The notes under the pieces: model-generated
Told to the model about the DNA's origin: nothing
Databases searched by the model: none
The model's input: the letters and a program-made list of their open reading frames with translations, nothing else
Shown here: positions 38,974 through 63,100 of the stretch, in pieces
Layout of the letters: the number at the start of each line of letters is the position of its first letter
How positions within the stretch are numbered: position 1 is the stretch's first letter
Assembly: GCA_965153285.1 (NCBI GenBank)
Contig: OZ229111.1
Source of the DNA: Podarcis tiliguerta
Taxonomy: Eukaryota
Direction: 5' to 3' (one strand)
DNA length: 64,000 nucleotides
Made by a program: the position numbers and the translations under genes

Positions 38974-39310
38974 TCTCTGAAAGTAGATGAGAACAAATAA
39001 GTTACACAAAGGGTACAAGTAGTTGCTTTATAAAATTACATCAGACAGATCCTATAGGCATTAATGAAATGTAACTGATAAATTACCAGGGTAACCACAG
39101 AAGAGGCTGAATAGTTCTTCATATACAGTAGATTATAGATTTCCATAAAATCTTCGGGGGTGTAAACATTTCTACAGAAATCTGCTGCAGTTGCTTACTG
39201 TAACCACCAAACAAGGAATGTGATGAGGGGATGAGGACCCTGTATATGGTGTGGCTGGGAAGAAACTCATTCTTGGTTAGCCTAACTTCCTTTTCCCTCT
39301 GCTCTTGAAG

Positions 39311-40469
39311 GTGGACAGTGTCCGAGACCGAAAGCCGAGTTTTCTCCAGGCTCAGAGCCGGAGCTGCACCGAGCTTCATAAGCACCTCACCTCCATCACT
39401 GCCCACTGCCCACACACAAAGGACAACTGGCCGCCGGACGAGTGCCACAGTGGCGGCACGGAGCCCCAGAGATATTGTGCCCACCATGGAGAGGACAGCG
39501 ACTCCGGTGAAGAGTTGCTGCCCTGCGGCAACATGGCAGCGACTCCGCCTTCTTCCTCCGAAGAAGGCACCGGAGAGAAGGAGCTGCACGCTACTGTGGA
39601 GCTCATCCGCTACATGCACACTTACTGCCTTCCCCCCAGAAAGCTGCCCCCCACAGACCTTGCCGATGTGAGACACCAGCATTTCCACAGCCCCTCCAAG
39701 AGGGCCAAGCCGGATTGCCCCCTGCAGCGGCCTCCGCTCTGCAGCAAGGACAGTTGCCCGCCCAGCTCTTGGCACCTCTCAGCGGGCTGCAAGCAGCCCA
39801 GAGCCCCCACAGCCAGCTTCTCCATCCTGAAGGAGCTGCTTGCCAGGGACCTCCCATGTGATGTGAGCAAGCCATACCGGTTGGCCAAGCCTGCATATGC
39901 CTCCTTGACCAGGTTGCAGCCGCCCAAGGCTCCGGGAGCTTCTCCGCCCGAGGCTGCTGGGGGATCCACGGAGGCGTGCAAGTCCGTGGGCAGAATGCCA
40001 CCAGAGGTGAAAACAGAGTCCAGACAGGGCCCCAAAGCAGACCCCGAGGTGAAGGAAGAGACTGGCGGCCCTGCAGAGGAGGAGGAGGACTGTGCAAAGC
40101 GGCCCCAGCTGGCCTTTGGGAAGGCAGGCCGCAAGCAGGAGAGCTTTATTTATGCCGTGCGGCGCTCCAAAAGACTCAACCCTGAGCTCAGTCTCTGGCT
40201 TTCCTTCCTTGATGACTCTCCCCCTGATCCGGCCACACCCCCTCAAAACAAAGTGGCCTCCCCAGAACTGTCCCTGTGCTCCTCCACTCTGCAGAACTTT
40301 GACAGGGAAGCACCAGCAGCAGAGGTTGAAGTGAGCGGTGCGGGAGAGGCAGAGGACAGGTATCAGAGTCTCCCGATGGAGCTGCAAACCCCCTCACCAG
40401 AGAGCTCCGGGGAGAGTGAAGCATGTGAGATCAGCGAGAGCCAGTGCTGCGCCCTTTTGCATCAGACAG
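39311..40469 (+). CDS. PPARGC1B: PGC-1beta exon 5 (SCTELHKHLTS, ELIRYMHTYCLP, ILKELL, KPYRLAKP, VRRSKRLNPEL)
   Basis: ttgaag|GTG acceptor, ACAG|gtaccc donor, 1159 nt inside ORF 39305-40519; PGC-1beta-type motifs. Confidence 0.95.
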
Positions 40470-40514
40470 GTACCCTAAGTAAGAGTCTGAACGTATGGGG
40501 AACATGGGAAGGGA

Positions 40515-40680
40515 CATAGGAAGCTGCCTTATACTGAGCCAGACCAATGGTCCATGCAGCTCAGGATTGTCCACAGTGTCTGACAGTGGCTCTCCAGGTC
40601 TTTCCCAGGCCTACTTGGAGATACTGTGGGTTGGCTCCTCCTGCAAGCAAGGCACATGCTCTTCGGTTGAGCTCTGTCCC
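40515..40680 (-). mobile_element. tRNA-derived squamate SINE (Squam3-like); related copies near 13874-14060, 25085-25290, 26280-26465, 59775-59835
   Basis: Shared cataggaagctgccttatactgag tail and tgctct...tgagct tRNA-like head across copies. Confidence 0.6.
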
Positions 40681-42908: not shown

Positions 42909-43680
42909 GTCTCACACCACCAACTACACCACCATACAAGCCTTCAGAGGAGGACCTGTATAAGCCAGACATTCACCAGAGGCCAGCCAAGGAGACTGCC
43001 ATCATCACCAGCTCTGAGCCACAGCCAATGATGGGGGACAGGGCAGCCTCTGGGAAGAAGCAGAAGAAGCACCCAGTGCGGACAGAGCTGTACGCACACC
43101 TGAGTCGGTCCACCCCCCACCTGCCCCACCCCGAGCCACATGGGGTGCTGAAGCGCCCTTTCTCACGCTCTTTTGGCGACCACGACTATTGCCAGGTCTT
43201 GAAGCCCGAGGCCTCGCTCCAGAGGAAGGTGCTGAAATCCTGGGAGCCCCTGAGCCATGTGGAAAACAAACACAAGCGGAGAGCCCCTGATGTGCACTAC
43301 CAGCACGAGAGTCAGGAGGGCGTCAATGGGACCTCAGTGAAGGAGGGAAGCCAGCAGCTGAGGGACCAGGAAATCAGGGCCAGCTTGACAAAACACTTTG
43401 GCCTCTTGGACAGTGCCCTCGATGCCGGGGAGGCGGCCTTCTGCAAGACGCCTGAATATGACACCGTCTTTGAGGACAGCTGCAGTGAGATTGGTTCCCC
43501 GCTGGAGGAAGAGGAGGAGGAGGAGGAAGAGGAGGAGGAGGAAGAGTGCTGCACAAGTCCATTGGAATCCAAGATGTGCCCCTACAAGAACCCTCTTTCC
43601 AGGGCCAGTTTGCACTATTGCTCCCGAAGCAGGTTCGATTCTGAGTCTTCATGCTGCAGGTCCAGGTCTCCAGCAAGCAG
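42909..43680 (+). CDS. PPARGC1B: PGC-1beta exon 8 (LTPPTTPPYKP, SFGDHDYCQ HCF-binding motif, Glu14 tract, RSRS)
   Basis: ataag|GT acceptor, AGCAG|gtgggc donor, 772 nt; DHDY at 43178-43189. Confidence 0.93.
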
Positions 43681-44578
43681 GTGGGCTTCCCTGCACAATT
43701 GTGAGTTCACAGGGTCTTTGGCGAAAGGGCTCAGAGAGACCAGTAGTGAGCAAAATTGTAGTGGGTTGCATTGGCTGGTCTTTACCGGCTCCCTCACAAA
43801 GGTAGCTACTGCTTTACAGGTGGCCCTCTGGCAGAGGTGCTGACTTTTTGCTTATGTTTCTCCAGGAGGTGCCGTGCACATCCATGCTGCTTTATAGATA
43901 ATATGATTACTCTGAAAGAGACTGGGTTGGGTGGGTCCAGAGATCCCTGTGAGCGAAGTTTCGCTCACAGGACCTCTCACTTACAGAAGTAGCAGAAGCA
44001 ATTTTTGCCAGTTCTCCTCTGCATCCCCTGAATATCTGTTTTGGAAAGTTGGAGGACCCTCGGGAACCGCCTGGGCAGTGGCAGAAGAGACTGGAGGGAG
44101 CAATCTCCTTCCCCCTTCCATTAGCAGTTTGCTGCACTAGATTGCCAGCCCCTTGTGTGAATGTCTCAAGCCTTTCCCTTTGCAGAAGAAATACTCTTGA
44201 TAAACGGGGAAAAAGAGGGAAGCAGCATCCAGGTGGGCAGAAATAAGTTTTAAGACCTTTTGCATCAGAAATGGAAGCCAAAGACTCAAATTGGTTGTAC
44301 CTAAGCACGGAGAAGAATTTTGAAGCATATTAGGCTCTGCAAATTTATTTCTGTCCACCCTTTCCCCCCTGTATTTGATGCCTTGCCGTTTCTCCTTTTT
44401 ATGCTGGATGCTGGCGTTTGTCTTTGAAAGCCTGCTGTTGCAGACACGGCATTCTTTGTGCTGTGAGACTGTCCCTGCAAGCAACAAGTGTGCCTCTACT
44501 TCCTTGTGATTTCTAGCGCTCAGACCAGCCAGAGTCCATTCAGGACTAAATTCATGTGCCTTCTTGTTTATCAAACAG

Positions 44579-57821: not shown

Positions 57822-58240
57822 AGGGCCCAAGGACTACTCTGTTTTGCCATGTCTGGCTGTTAGAAATTCAGCTCCGGCCCATCGAGCTGATACGGCTCAT
57901 CTTGGATCAAGCCCAGCAGAGTATACATCCACTGTCCGCAACGAAAGGATGAGGCAGATATGGCTACATTGCGAAAGTTTTATTCCTAAGCTATGCAGAG
58001 AGCATACAAATACACATCTTGTCTCTGTGAGAAGCAGAGAGCAACTCCAACAAATAACGGCAGAACAAAGGAAACCGGAAACCAGTAAACGTCACATCCC
58101 GTCTCCCTTTCCCGTGGGAATCCAACAGTATCTGAAATGTGGAAAGAAAACATAGTCTTGTGACTACCAGCTGCTGCTCAGTGAGGGAAACAAAAACCAA
58201 CAGGGCCCAAGGACTACTCTGTTTTGCCATGCCTGGCTGT
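57822..58240. repeat. 39-bp direct repeat pair (57822-57860 and 58202-58240)
   Basis: AGGGCCCAAGGACTACTCTGTTTTGCCATG(T/C)CTGGCTGT, 38/39 identical. Confidence 0.95.
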
Positions 58241-58255: not shown

Positions 58256-58979
58256 CAAAGTGCCAACCCTCAATTTTCTGTTTTGTATAGCAATTTAGTC
58301 ACTTTAGTCACTTTTATTTTGTGATCTGCCTTTGAGCATGCTATTGGAAAAGTGGGATACAAATTTAACAAGCAGATAGATAGATGATAGATAGATTCAG
58401 TAACACACCTCGGGATCTTACAGTGAAGGGAGGGCCACAGTACAATACAATACAATTATAATTAATAATACTTGGTCAAAAATGAGGTGCTGATACTCGT
58501 ATCTTGATAAAAGCACCATAGGTGCCCGCACAAAGTGATATTTTTCAAAACATGCATAGGATTCTCTACTCTGTAGCACCACACAAAGAGAAAACTGGAT
58601 CCTTTAAAATCTACCTCTTCTCTTTGATTTTAATGAAGGATCTTAGATGCAAGGTTTCCTGGATTTGTTTTGTGAATTGTTTGTATGCTGCCTTATTGCT
58701 TGAGTGCCTTATGCTTTCTTTTATTTTCTATTGTAGTTGGTTTTCTTGGAGATTGTAAGTCACTTGTGGAGGAAGTTCCAAAAAAAGCGGAGTATAAATC
58801 TTTAAATTTTTAAAAAAACCACCAAATAAATAAAATAGTAGACATCTTCATTGGAAGAGCTGAGTCTATTGTGCCAAATGTGTTTTTTTAATAAAAATAA
58901 AAATCCTGCAGGTTTCCTTTCATTGAACTGGAGCTTAGCTAGTCTGCAAAGATTTTGGATCCATGGCAGAGAGACAGCA

Positions 58980-59540
58980 ATGGAATTTGAAACAACCACC
59001 TGCTGGAACCTGGTGACACACAGCATACATGGCCATCCTGTGTCCCTGAGCTGGGGCTACAGGAGTTCTCTTAGGACTCTGCCCAGGGCATACCGAACAC
59101 AGTGCAGGAGTCCAAAGCCAGCACCTCCTACCCTGTGTTCAAGGTTCATGCCAGGTTGTCAACAGAGAGCTGCCAGTTCTTCGCTGCCTCTTCAGAAGGA
59201 AAAGCCTCCTTGGAAGCTCAAAGAAAGGAGAATCATGATTCCCTGCGATTTCTGCCTAGGGAAACCTCACTTAGCAGAGAAGAAGTGTCTGACCTGTGAG
59301 GCATCCCTGTGCCGGGACCACCTGAGGAAACACAATTCGAAGGCCACCCAGAAGAACCATGCCTTGGTGGCTCTTGGGACCGCTGGGGCCCAGGAGGAGA
59401 AGAAATGCCCAGAGCATGCCATGCTGCTGGAATGCTACTGTCAAGACGACTTGGTGTGTGTTTGCAAGGCCTGCTCCACCACTGGCTCCCACAGCAGCCA
59501 CAGCGTCGTCGCCCTGAAGGACGAGTACGACAGGCAGATG
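58980..59540 (+). CDS. TRIM-family protein, first coding exon: degenerate RING remnant + intact B-box1 + B-box2 (start codon uncertain: 58980 or 59235)
   Basis: B-box1 CDFC-x10-CLTC-x4-C-x2-H-x3-H-x8-H from 59244; B-box2 C-x2-H-x7-C-x2-D-x4-C-x2-C-x5-H-x2-H; ATG|gtaagg donor; gcaATGG at 58980 is in frame and open. Confidence 0.85.
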
Positions 59541-60646
59541 GTAAGGGGCTTCAACCAGGCATGGAGCGTTCCAAAGAGGTCCTCCAATTAAATGTAACAG
59601 AGAGAGATGTTTTAAATAGAAACGGGTGTCAGAATGTGGAAGTGGGGGGAGAAAACGAAGCAAAAAACATCAAGCATCAAGTAGCATTCAAAGCCTGATA
59701 ACTAAGGAGTAGCAAATTATACTTGTGGGGTGTTTTTCTGATGGTGAGGCATGTATTTATACAAATATGTAGTCAGGGGAAGCGCTGTAGCTCACTGTGG
59801 TAGAGCATGCGCTTTTCACCCAGAAGGTCCCATTGAACTGAGAAATGACACCAAACCAACAGTGGAGACTGCCTATAGACCTTGCTTAGCCTCAGCACTT
59901 TCTGCAGGTATCTTCATTTCCGTGCTTGACAATGTGTTTGTGCATTACAGTTCCTGCCATTGATCACTGACTTTTTCCCCCCTCTGAGCATGGCAGTATG
60001 CCAGCCAAGATTAACAAACACTCCACTGTGTGTTAACAGCCCTTCCCAGGGAACATCTTATCAATGACCCCTGCTAGATTAGAGGACAATTTTGCAAAAA
60101 AGTTAGTGGTAACTAATGCCATTGCTTTTAATTTATGGCTTTCTGTAAGAACCTGCAGCCTGCTTCTAGAAGAACAAGTTTGCTGTTTGCTTGTTGTTTG
60201 CCGCCCTAGGCTCCTTCAGGAGTAAGGGCAGGAGATAAATTACACAAAAAATTACAAAATTACATAAAAAATAAAAGTTCTGCTGAGGCTAGTGGGACTT
60301 TGACCAGGATATGGGGACAGAAGAGCCTTGGAACACTTCTGTGTACTTGATTGCATACTTGATTGTGCTTTAAATCATTAGGAGTCTAGCTACTTGGGAA
60401 GAAGACCCAACATATTATTTGAAAAGACAAATAAAGCAGAAATTCACCATCATGGCAGCCCAAACATACAAATGGAGTTCAATGAGGGTTATTTCCAAGT
60501 CAATGTGCATTCCATTCTCAAACTGCAACCACAAACATCCTTGCCAGGATGCATGGCAGCCACCTGAGAGTTCTCAAGGAACTCAAATGTGAAATTGCTG
60601 GTCTTCAAAACAGAAATATGTCCCTTGGATCATGAAGCAGAGCTAG

Positions 60647-60949
60647 CAAGGCTTCTACAAGGGAAAATCCTGTCTCACAAACCCATGAGGGTGTCAACAA
60701 GCGTGTCAGCAAGCATATAGACAGAGGTGATCTGGTTGACATAGCATACCTGGACTTTCTAAAAATGTTTGACAAAGTATGTCACCAAAGACTCCTGAGT
60801 AAGCTTAGTAGTCAAGAACTAAGAGGAGAAGTCCTCTTGTGGATCAGGAATTAGTTAAGTTGGAAGAAGCAAAGAATAGGAATAAATGAACAGTTCTCCA
60901 AATGGAAAAAGTAGAAAGCAGAGTCCCCCAAGGATCGGTATTGGAACCT
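60647..60949 (+). mobile_element. CR1 LINE ORF2 reverse-transcriptase fragment (degenerate)
   Basis: Broken translation GF.KGKSCLTN ... VDIAYLDF.K.FDKV.HQRLL ... VPQGSVL.P. Confidence 0.88.
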
Positions 60950-61031
60950 CTGCTATAGTTGATTAATCTACCAAATAAACTTACTGAAATGTACAGTTCT
61001 GTGATTTCCCTTCTGATTTTCTCTTAATCAG

Positions 61032-61127
61032 GCAATTCTCTCACGGATTATGAAATCAATGCAGGAATACAAAACTGCCACAAAGAAGACACTCTTACAG
61101 CTTCAGAAAAGTGAGGATCAGATAAAG
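61032..61127 (+). CDS. TRIM coiled-coil exon (96 nt, AILSRIMKSMQEYK...EDQIK)
   Basis: aatcag|GCA acceptor, AAG|gtttgt donor; a 96-nt phase-0 exon is typical after the B-box exon in TRIMs. Confidence 0.88.
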
Positions 61128-61728
61128 GTTTGTGCTGTAACTTCATGATGCCATGCATCACTCTCAGGTCCCAGGTGGAAAATAATGAACGTGTCTCCAA
61201 TATGCTTCTCCATCCAGCATCCCCAATCTTTTCATTTTAACTATGCAGCACTTTTGGCCAGTGACTCTTTTCACCCAAAGGTTTATTGCCTGAACATCTA
61301 CAGTATCTATATCTATCATCTATCTATCACACATGGACACAGATTTAGTTAGTGCACGCTCTATTTACTGTCTGGACAGGCATGTGTTTCTACACCCTCT
61401 TCAGATACTTAACCTCAGAGGAAGGACTGGGTTTTTAAAAAATGGCAACTCTAGTGCAGGTGTATGTGCACTTTCAGTTTTTGTTTAAGGCATCCCTAAA
61501 ATCTACCTAACAGCCAAGTTAGGGACAAAATAAAGACAGTAGTTTACCAGGGACAAGTACCCGAAAACATGGGCTCTCCCTGGTTAAGACTGTGTGACCA
61601 CTAACAGACACTAGGGGGCTTCCAAGGCAGCACTTCATATCACAGACCCACACAGAGCTTGTCTGAGACCTGGGGTGGGAGTCTTGTTAGAATAAAGTTA
61701 AAAACTCAAACAGAAGAGCAGCTGGGCG

Positions 61729-61900
61729 CAGTGGCGGAGCTTCATGCTCTGGCATGGGGGGGCTGGTGTGTGTCCTGGGGGCGTGGCCCGCTGCCTGCGG
61801 TGGTGTGGTGCCCAGCACAGGCGGGGGCAGCCACGATGGCACCCCACCAGGATCGCGCTGCCAGGGGCGCTCCCCCCGCACTCCTCTTCCTCCGCCAATG
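61729..61900. mobile_element. GC-rich hAT MITE in TRIM intron
   Basis: TIRs CAGTGGCGGAG / CTCCGCCAATG; 8-bp TSD gctgggcg / gctgggcc. Confidence 0.8.
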
Positions 61901-62733
61901 GCTGGGCCAGCTTAGCTCTCCAAGGCCCAGGACAAGGGCTACCCCCTGCCTCTGCACAGCCCTGCATATCAGGCAACCTTTTCTGCCACAACAGAAGACT
62001 GGCGAGATGTGAGCCTCTGGTGCTACTTTTGCTGGGAAACCAGCAGGGCATGAGAAAAAGAGCACTCAATGGTAAGGAAGCCAAAGTCAAGCCAGGGAAC
62101 AGGCAAGAAATCCCAGCCAAGGTGCAAGGATTCAGTGAAAGGGCTAGTGGGTGAACCATTACAACTGAACCAGAACTCCCAGCAGCACCAGACAGCAGAG
62201 ATAGGCTAGCTGAGGCTGATGGCAACAGGTTGGGGGAGGTTGTATTAGGATCTGGGAATTAAAAAGCTCTGTTGACATTCAAGCTGCAGTCCTATGCACA
62301 CTTACACGGGACTTACTCTTGAGTATATATGCATAAGTTTGCACTGCACATTACTCAGCCACAGGATAACTGAGGCAAGAATACTTTGGTGTGATCTTCT
62401 GAGGGGCTGATGCCCACAGTGCTTTTCAGAGCGACTGGCAACATACTTGGGAGGTTGCTGACAGCTATAAACTTGATAGCTTGGTGGCCTGTTTTGCGGA
62501 AGCAATATGTAATTTTTCACTATAAAAATGTTATCTGACATATATAGTCACCACACCTTTTAAAATAATGGTTGTTTCCTAAGGGAGTTTTATGAACAGG
62601 GGAGGGACTGTGACCACAGAGCTAACAATCCTTTTTAGCCTAGATAGGGAAGTATTGCTCAAGACACCCCGGGTTTATGCCCTAAGTCCAACAATTCAAC
62701 TGTAATAAAAAGTTGCCATCTTTCTTTCCTTAG

Positions 62734-62967
62734 AACAATAAGAAAACGTTGACAGATCAGCTCTCCAGAATCTTCCAAGAGATCAAGTCTCAGGTAGATC
62801 AGAAGGAGAAGCAGATCCTAGGTGACATCCAGTCCAATGAGAAAAAGCAGCTGGCTGACATGGCGGCTCTGAAGAAGCAAGTGGCAGACAAGAGGGACGT
62901 GGCTGCCCAGGGCCTTCGGGAGCTACAAGCGCTAACGGAGAAAACAGATGCTTGCCTCTTCCTCAAG
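62734..62967 (+). CDS. TRIM coiled-coil exon (234 nt, NNKKTLTDQLSRIFQEIKSQVDQKEKQIL...ACLFLK)
   Basis: ccttag|AAC acceptor, AAG|gtgagc donor; heptad-like pattern; matches the usual 231/234-nt TRIM exon. Confidence 0.9.
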
Positions 62968-63077: not shown

Positions 63078-63100
63078 GATTTTCAGCTAGCCCAAGAGAG
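63078..63100 (+). CDS. TRIM 23-nt linker exon (DFQLAQER); gene continues beyond the window
   Basis: tctgtag|GAT acceptor, AG|gtaagt donor; a 23-nt exon is characteristic of the 96/231-234/23 TRIM exon series. Confidence 0.85.

Follow-up and report, generated by a model that had tools for sequence, protein, structure and literature searches.

A 64-kb stretch of DNA from the lizard Podarcis tiliguerta (contig OZ229111.1 of assembly GCA_965153285.1), hereafter the window, carries near its 3′ end four exons of a tripartite motif (TRIM) gene, identified below as TRIM211. Exon 1 encodes two B-boxes and, immediately upstream of them, the frameshifted remnant of a RING domain that turtles, birds and crocodiles still encode. 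The window contains no runs of N. The features of the gene within it are as follows.

58785–59540, plus strand: exon 1 as transcribed, judged from a congener contig (run X15); the 5′ limit is a minimum and the donor GT lies at 59541.
58980–59234, plus strand: N-terminal extension open reading frame (ORF), 85 codons in the B-box frame; G occupies both −3 and +4 of ATG 58980.
59235–59237, plus strand: ATG of most squamate models, opening M-x-P-C-D-F, with A at −3.
59244–59363, plus strand: B-box1, every Cys/His ligand kept; PF22586 at 25.3 bits, just below the cut-off of 27; alignment to the tandem B-box of MID1.
59391–59513, plus strand: B-box2, ligands complete; PF00643 at 34.4 bits (cut-off 24.1); Protein Data Bank (PDB) matches to the B-box2 of TRIM39, TRIM29 and TRIM41.
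61032–61127, plus strand: exon 2, 96 nt, start of the coiled coil; its 32 residues equal the P. muralis model; AG/GT borders; spliced in the X15 contig.
62734–62967, plus strand: exon 3, 234 nt, coiled coil; 98.7 % identity to P. muralis; splice sites present; spliced in the X15 contig.
63078–63100, plus strand: exon 4, 23 nt, D-F-Q-L-A-Q-E-R; matches Podarcis models; further exons lie beyond the window.

The main frame of exon 1 has no stop from 58842 to the donor at 59541 and runs for 187 codons from ATG 58980. Pfam placed PF22586 (B-box1-type) at residues 89–128 and PF00643 (B-box2) at residues 138–178, while no RING match was obtained with Pfam in exon 1 or in the 400-residue Podarcis model that includes the extension. 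Exons 2–4 are free of stops, are bounded by AG and GT, and match Podarcis models at 99–100 % where scored; they correspond to the first part of a TRIM coiled coil that is recognized in the P. muralis orthologue (PF25600, 30.7 bits, cut-off 30). In the orthologue models the remainder of this coiled coil and the helix at the C-terminus are intact.

Exon 1 was used as the query for identification, and the remaining exons were compared singly to orthologous proteins. Identity to P. muralis XP_028573400.2 is 94.7 % in exon 1 and 98.7 % in exon 3, and the window sequence is not exactly equal to any of three Podarcis models. XP_028573400.1, the previous version of this record, is listed as TRIM211 in a supplementary table of Campbell et al. 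2023 (PMC10445537), and TRIM211 belongs to the TRIM25 clade and has no published function (PMC10445537). Because of this identity to a record listed as TRIM211, the window gene is assigned to TRIM211, of which its sequence makes it an orthologue. Orthologues were gathered by a full HMMER scan with exon 1 and by word-index searches, which yielded squamate proteins from Podarcis muralis, P. raffonei, P. lilfordi, Lacerta, Zootoca, Rhineura, Hemicordylus, Lerista, Sceloporus, Phrynosoma, Anolis, Eublepharis, Paroedura, Gekko and Heteronotia. The RefSeq name of the squamate proteins is ‘tripartite motif-containing protein 29-like’, and that of the turtle, bird and crocodile proteins is ‘TRIM25-like’.

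The N-termini of the turtle, bird and crocodile proteins are well conserved and read continuously from Met through 18 residues, a C3HC4 RING and a linker into B-box1. A Pfam RING was found in both outgroup orthologues tested (one turtle, one bird). Positions 58992–59233 of the window align, with frameshifts, to the RING and linker of these orthologues, and the following pieces can be distinguished.

58963–59016, plus strand: probable ancestral start, ccATGGCAGAG, reading M-A-E (compare turtle MAEAEEEF) and now out of frame.
58992–59063, plus strand: first half of the RING fossil, in the main frame; PVSLS at 59037–59051 is identical to the orthologue consensus.
59064–59065, plus strand: first frameshift, two extra bases, placed 3′ of the codon that follows the His ligand and 5′ of the conserved Phe.
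59066–59143, plus strand: second half of the RING fossil, in the shifted frame; Phe, ligand 5 as TCT 59069, the stop TAG 59072 and ligand 6 as TCT 59078.
59144–59233, plus strand: fossil of the linker from RING to B-box1, in the shifted frame; SSEGK at 59189–59203 and AQRK at 59216–59227.
59228–59234, plus strand: second frameshift, net +1; homology to gecko stops at 59227 in the shifted frame and restarts at 59235 in the main frame.

At the eight ligand positions the residues are T, C, W, Y, S, S, Y and F, of which the first two are tentative assignments (ligand 1 as ACA, ligand 2 kept as TGC 59001). TGG 59052 stands for ligand 3 and TAC 59058 for the His ligand, giving W-G-Y where orthologues read C-G-H, and 15 nt are inserted at about 59019–59033, 5′ of PVSLS. 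Beyond the first frameshift, the shifted frame continues with Q-E-S-K-A at 59105–59119, ligand 7 as TAC 59129, P-V, ligand 8 as TTC 59138 and Lys at 59141. In this frame F-S-x-D-S corresponds to F-C-x-x-C, Q-E-S-K-A to Q-Q-S-K-A, and S-Y-P-V-F-K to S-C-P-M/V-C-K. The linker fossil is about 10 codons shorter, by deletion, than in turtles, birds and geckos, and the second frameshift restores the B-box frame directly before the Met common to most other squamate models. The frameshift at 59064–59065 is common to P. muralis and P. raffonei, which show the same protein frame, and to a further organism (organism B, run X4), which shows no indel. ATG 58963 is probably the ancestral start codon, to judge from three residues, its context and its position; it now opens a 17-codon upstream ORF that ends at TGA 59014–59016.

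With seven of eight zinc ligands replaced and the remnant split over three reading frames, with an in-frame stop, an insertion and a deletion, no RING can fold, and recruitment of a ubiquitin-conjugating enzyme (E2) is not expected. The exon is unable to yield a foldable RING. A RING-type ubiquitin ligase (E3) has a foldable cross-brace RING that binds an E2, and the ligand codons and frames leave none here. A hand count on the alignments gave one of eight ligands kept against 16 of 37 other residues. This difference is not significant, and for that reason a targeted dismantling is not claimed; ordinary neutral decay suffices for the pattern.

Much of this anatomy had been proposed in a first-pass annotation made from the letters of the window. 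Its reading of HPVSLSWGY in the main frame, with Cys replaced by Trp at 59052 and His by Tyr at 59058, was recovered codon for codon, as was its two-nucleotide slip followed by F-S-*-D-S-x16-Y-P-V-F-K, in which 59064–59065 are the extra bases and the TCT, TAG, TCT, TAC and TTC codons lie where it had placed them. It had further held the first CxxC to be deleted or eroded; erosion is borne out and deletion is not, the second Cys seeming (tentatively) to be kept at 59001. Its expectation that orthologues would carry an intact C3HC4 RING aligning across a frameshift was also borne out, the Pfam RING aligning to 59037–59143. The main frame was indeed open from 58980 into both B-boxes with every zinc ligand present, and the next three exons were stop-free with good splice sites.

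An inverted repeat of 16 nt (14 of 16 paired, 14-nt loop) lies at 59095–59140, over RING ligands 7 and 8, and no substitution in this interval is listed in four congeners, a list that is complete for one run only. As a candidate RNA element the hairpin was unconvincing (−19.5 kcal/mol, with a mild z of −2.1; whole leader z = −1.1).

To compare the remnant with intact RINGs, 58841–59234 was aligned in a frameshift-aware manner to a profile built from 25 N-terminal sequences of turtles, birds and crocodiles. The unmasked score was 46.8 against 24.9±3.7 for dinucleotide shuffles, and was reached by none of 400 shuffles and by one of 316 genomic segments, this one being a Cys-rich chance match. 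The Cys/His ligand columns were masked because random Cys-rich stretches inflate the control scores; the masked score was 52.8 against 21.3±3.3 for genomic segments (maximum 36.6), with none of 630 reaching it (z = 9.7). Plain tblastn (E = 0.07–10) and a hidden Markov model (HMM) of the outgroup N-terminus (E = 0.65) gave only weak matches; Cys columns dominate the profile, and the frameshift-aware, ligand-masked alignment was used for that reason. Among squamates, a gecko ORF (Logan contig, P0028) that is continuous, in the same frame, with the gecko's B-box1 could be aligned to the shifted frame of the window at 59081–59227 (E = 2e-7). This identifies the shifted frame as the ancestral one. 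The N-terminus of the same gecko ORF was the best match of an archosaur/turtle RING-linker HMM among 2771 targets (E = 0.026). RING homology of 58992–59233 is thus confirmed, far above chance. No stop-free RING pattern was found anywhere in the window, the frames recur in the independent assemblies of P. muralis and P. raffonei, and organism B is without an indel in the ORF, which rules out an assembly artefact or a RING exon hidden in the window.

Two other resemblances were rejected. The main-frame peptide of 59001–59092, CWNLVTHSIHGHPVSLSWGYRSSLR, is identical to thioredoxin reductase at 13 of 31 positions (E = 0.17), and this was the sole match in a PDB search with the 90-residue N-terminus (SLNWGYRVALR against SLSWGYRSSLR). 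It was judged a coincidence because of the RING homology and because a P. muralis variant reads SWGC. A second HPVSLS, at 58092, is not a duplicate, no DNA repeat connecting it to 59037.

The remainder of the gene is not dead. A 1116-nt contig from run X15 of a congener (organism E, about 3 % diverged) lies on 58785–59539, 61031–61125 and 62732–62965, with 8 gap letters in exon 1. Because the same contig spans three exon blocks, it represents a spliced transcript of exons 1, 2 and 3, and the whole fossil lies inside it. Substitutions were counted against organism B, whose run is the only one with every difference listed. The B-box part has four nonsynonymous and four synonymous changes, a ratio of nonsynonymous to synonymous rates (dN/dS) of about 0.26, and the N-terminal extension has four and one, a dN/dS of about 1.2. 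On these very few changes, the extension appears to evolve like neutral sequence. The coiled coil is 67–86 % identical between lacertids, iguanians and geckos. The most conserved part is the C-terminal 77 residues, 78–92 % identical across squamates and 84 % between gecko and lacertid, whereas identity there falls to 20–33 % in comparisons with, or among, turtles, birds and crocodiles. This C-terminal region lies beyond the window and comprises residues ~220–297 of the Lacerta protein P0206, from IKKQNF.

An AlphaFold model of the Lacerta protein (mean predicted local distance difference test score, pLDDT, 75) shows tandem B-boxes, a 110-residue helix, a short helix, a 38-residue return helix that covers the conserved C-terminal region, and a disordered tail. 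Its TRIM matches in Foldseek were the B-box/coiled-coil structures of TRIM72, TRIM28 and TRIM5alpha, with low template modelling scores, as expected because the model is an elongated monomer.

Exon 1 also varies unevenly between organism B and the window (58500–59829). Thirteen of 561 sites differ in exon 1, one site in the 480 nt upstream and two in the first 289 nt of intron 1; later introns differ by ~1.0–1.3 %. Six of the exon 1 differences, five of them amino-acid changing, are common to all four other species compared. By these counts exon 1 seems to change faster than the introns, and the promoter and leader more slowly.

Taken together, we consider it highly probable that exon 1 carries a decayed RING remnant, that the rest of TRIM211 is alive, and that the loss of the RING is ancient in squamates. 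The loss is called ancient because the RING-less state is common to every squamate model retrieved. In outline, the ancestral TRIM211 RING, still encoded by turtles, birds and crocodiles, would have decayed in squamate exon 1, leaving a living remainder of tandem B-boxes, a long TRIM coiled coil and a squamate-conserved C-terminal helix. The squamate-wide product would start at ATG 59235, which in Podarcis would place the fossil within the mRNA leader, with possible additional translation from ATG 58980 as an unconstrained 85-residue extension. From what is known of the TRIM family, recruitment of an E2 enzyme would be impossible for such a protein, the usual antiparallel coiled-coil dimer would probably form, and the most likely role would be a non-catalytic one, as scaffold, adaptor or regulator, comparable to that of TRIM14, TRIM16, TRIM29 and TRIM44.

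Several points weigh against this account. The scaffold function is an inference, as is the ligase-dead decoy or scaffold role suggested in the first-pass annotation, and the duck copy is a reported likely pseudogene, so that the gene can be dispensable. Expression is seen in a congener and not in P. tiliguerta, and contigs give neither a transcription start nor a level. The dN/dS values are drawn from 5 and 8 substitutions, and shared versus independent lesions were judged from protein models and two Logan ORFs. Under ribosome scanning, moreover, five upstream ATGs, one of them in a strong context, precede 59235.

The last point bears on where translation begins. Because scanning must pass five ATGs, 59235 is less likely to be the main start in Podarcis, and it is a real possibility, if somewhat short of an even one, that the main product there starts at ATG 58980 (or 58878) and that the scrambled RING fossil is translated as a new N-terminal peptide, its frame kept open only since a stop would cut off the B-box/coiled-coil protein. 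ATG 58980 stands in a strong context inside the transcribed leader, and the RefSeq models of P. muralis and P. raffonei, including the 400-residue model, contain the extension and begin there. The main frame has no stop over 131 codons upstream of 59235, against five and six stops in the other two frames; an open frame of this length arose in 9 of 5000 shuffles, and one of 85 codons from 58980 in 216 of 5000. Upstream ORFs in frame are also present elsewhere, with at least 76 codons in the gecko contig and 62 codons in an older model of Anolis sagrei. However, the Met of 59235 is the annotated start in Lacerta (L. agilis), Rhineura, Hemicordylus, geckos and most iguanians, and Zootoca starts at the Met of 59148, so that within Lacertidae the extension is seemingly not conserved, and the Podarcis species are too closely related to give independent evidence. 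The extension has, besides its dN/dS of about 1.2, seven changes in 85 residues against three in 102 in the B-boxes, and the out-of-frame ORF of ATG 58963 overlaps 58980. Both routes proposed in the first-pass annotation, a new N-terminal peptide and initiation at 59235, are thus candidates.

Returning to the decay of the RING, its age was judged from squamate models of 11 genera, geckos included, all of which are without a RING. The sample covers lacertids, an amphisbaenian, a cordylid, a skink, iguanians and geckos; no snake, anguimorph, acrodont or tuatara protein was retrieved, an absence that carries little weight in a word-index search. The first-pass annotation had supposed a lineage-specific RING-less TRIM: the RING-less state holds, and its restriction to this lizard does not, since all Squamata sampled share it. 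Nearly all squamate models have a Met two residues before P-C-D-F (three in the skink Lerista), where outgroups have Ile, Val, Leu or Thr. Anolis carolinensis has Thr at this position and starts two residues further upstream. This distribution points to a loss of the RING in or near the squamate stem. The squamate stem dates to about 200 million years ago.

A loss that occurred later and independently in several squamate lineages, instead of once in the stem, is unlikely. It would accord with the lack of any ligand substitution common to gecko and lacertid (A, S, N, Q, C, V against W, Y, S, S, Y, F), with the ancestral frame that leads into B-box1 in the gecko where the lacertid is frameshifted, and with the 42 % identity that the fossil retains between gecko and lacertid, a value more readily explained by a later onset of decay. 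However, all squamate models are without a RING and most share the Met before B-box1 that outgroups lack, and independent decay of the ligands is also expected after a single inactivating event. In addition, the older Anolis sagrei model aligns, weakly (E = 0.02), to the main frame of the window over the RING tail, which hints weakly at a frameshift common to iguanians and lacertids.

The B-boxes themselves are unevenly kept among squamates. Geckos (P0166, P0168, P0169, P0197, P0028) have lost B-box1 ligands, with a 5-residue deletion, and keep B-box2. Pleurodont iguanians (P0165, P0021, P0167, P0213) keep B-box1 and have lost B-box2 ligands, with deletions. Lacertids and Hemicordylus keep both (window 59244–59513), as do Rhineura and Lerista with small changes. 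Among turtle models, a RefSeq ‘isoform X2’ is without a RING: Gopherus P0170 starts at a Met inside the last RING C-P-M-C, and the shorter Chelonoidis P0174 has no RING domain match. Judging from these isoform models, a RING-less product may predate the squamate loss.

That the whole locus is a transcribed pseudogene in P. tiliguerta, its open frame a leftover, is very unlikely. In its favour, no working RING is left, the duck orthologue is reported to be transcribed and a likely pseudogene (PMC10445537), and B-box1 is lost in geckos and B-box2 in iguanians. Against this, all four window exons have open frames and canonical splice sites, the B-box ligands are complete, identity to P. muralis is 99–100 % in exons 2 and 3, and the conservation of the coiled coil and C-terminus across squamates, the B-box dN/dS and the spliced transcript all speak for a living gene. 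The marks of a unitary pseudogene were not found in the exons within the window, which are open, constrained and spliced in the congener contig. A simple pseudogene, which the first-pass annotation had named as the alternative to a functional RING-less TRIM, does not fit the intact, conserved downstream exons and their splicing in congener RNA. Finally, it is scarcely credible that the RING-like spacing is due to chance or that an assembly error masks an intact RING: roughly one codon in four is a single step away from Cys, individual tblastn matches are poor and the same peptide weakly matches thioredoxin reductase, but the ligand-masked score (z = 9.7) and the gecko alignment (E = 2e-7) are far from random, the fossil pieces are collinear, correctly placed and immediately 5′ of B-box1, and the same frames and substitutions recur in other assemblies and runs.

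The decayed RING of a living TRIM211 is a clean but modest case of domain loss. RING-less TRIMs are known, and the route by which a ligase module is lost is rarely visible. Here the remnant lies in a transcribed first exon, with intact outgroup orthologues and differing states of decay in geckos, lacertids and probably iguanians, which gives a natural series for the shedding of a catalytic domain, the takeover by a new start codon and the possible re-use of formerly coding sequence as a peptide. The series could also be used to ask where selection acts in this uncharacterised protein, whose clade, that of TRIM25, is linked to innate immunity. A wider reading is doubtful as a whole: TRIM211 would have turned from an E3 ligase into a ligase-dead scaffold with the coiled coil and C-terminal helix as its core, the zinc modules would have become dispensable in turn (the RING throughout squamates, B-box1 among geckos and B-box2 among pleurodont iguanians), and the RING remnant of Podarcis would be translated as a new peptide. 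In the literature, no description was found of the fossil, of RING loss across squamates, of the mosaic pattern in which B-boxes are lost or of the strong constraint on the C-terminus. RING-less models, including the Podarcis extension, and the name TRIM211 are already public. The effect on current understanding is modest because gene models and name exist.

Introns 1 and 2 contain, at 60528–60995 and 61620–61931, GC-rich sequence with G-runs, where every DNA run shows a thousands-fold contig depth and numerous joints and loose ends; these are high-copy repeats. No tRNA was found in introns 1–2 with ARAGORN. Further upstream, two large plus-strand ORFs (39305–40519 and 43028–43843) contain a DHDYCQ motif and a long poly-Glu run. 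These we take to be typical of PGC-1beta, which would place PPARGC1B upstream of TRIM211.

Among known systems, the closest is TRIM211 as described previously (PMC10445537), which is the same gene. The duck copy lies inside the 3′ untranslated region annotation of PPARGC1B, a position that would fit that in the window, and is probably a pseudogene, transcribed and with premature stops throughout (PMC10445537). The outgroup proteins of TRIM211 have a RING, two B-boxes and a coiled coil, whereas the squamate proteins are without the RING; searches in the text of PMC10445537 gave no mention of a RING-less lizard copy. To the TRIM25 clade (TRIM14/16/25/47/65, RNF135) it is linked by 4cfg, the best full-length PDB sequence match, by the shared Pfam TRIM_CC coiled coil and by the RefSeq name ‘TRIM25-like’ of the bird and turtle orthologues. 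Unlike members of that clade, no retrieved orthologue was found to have a PRY/SPRY domain, and unlike TRIM25 the squamate protein has no RING, hence E3 activity of the TRIM25 type is not expected. The mammalian RING-less proteins TRIM29, TRIM16, TRIM14 and TRIM44 are alike in combining B-box and coiled coil without a RING. The squamate gene is not an orthologue of TRIM29, however, the name ‘TRIM29-like’ expressing similarity only, and compared with these mammalian proteins the squamate loss is secondary and recent enough for the remnant still to be visible in the exon. In the duck pseudogene the same family member is in decay and still transcribed, with stops throughout, whereas in the lizard the RING alone is destroyed and the rest is under constraint. 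The annotation is corrected accordingly: the squamate ‘TRIM29-like’ protein is TRIM211 minus its RING.

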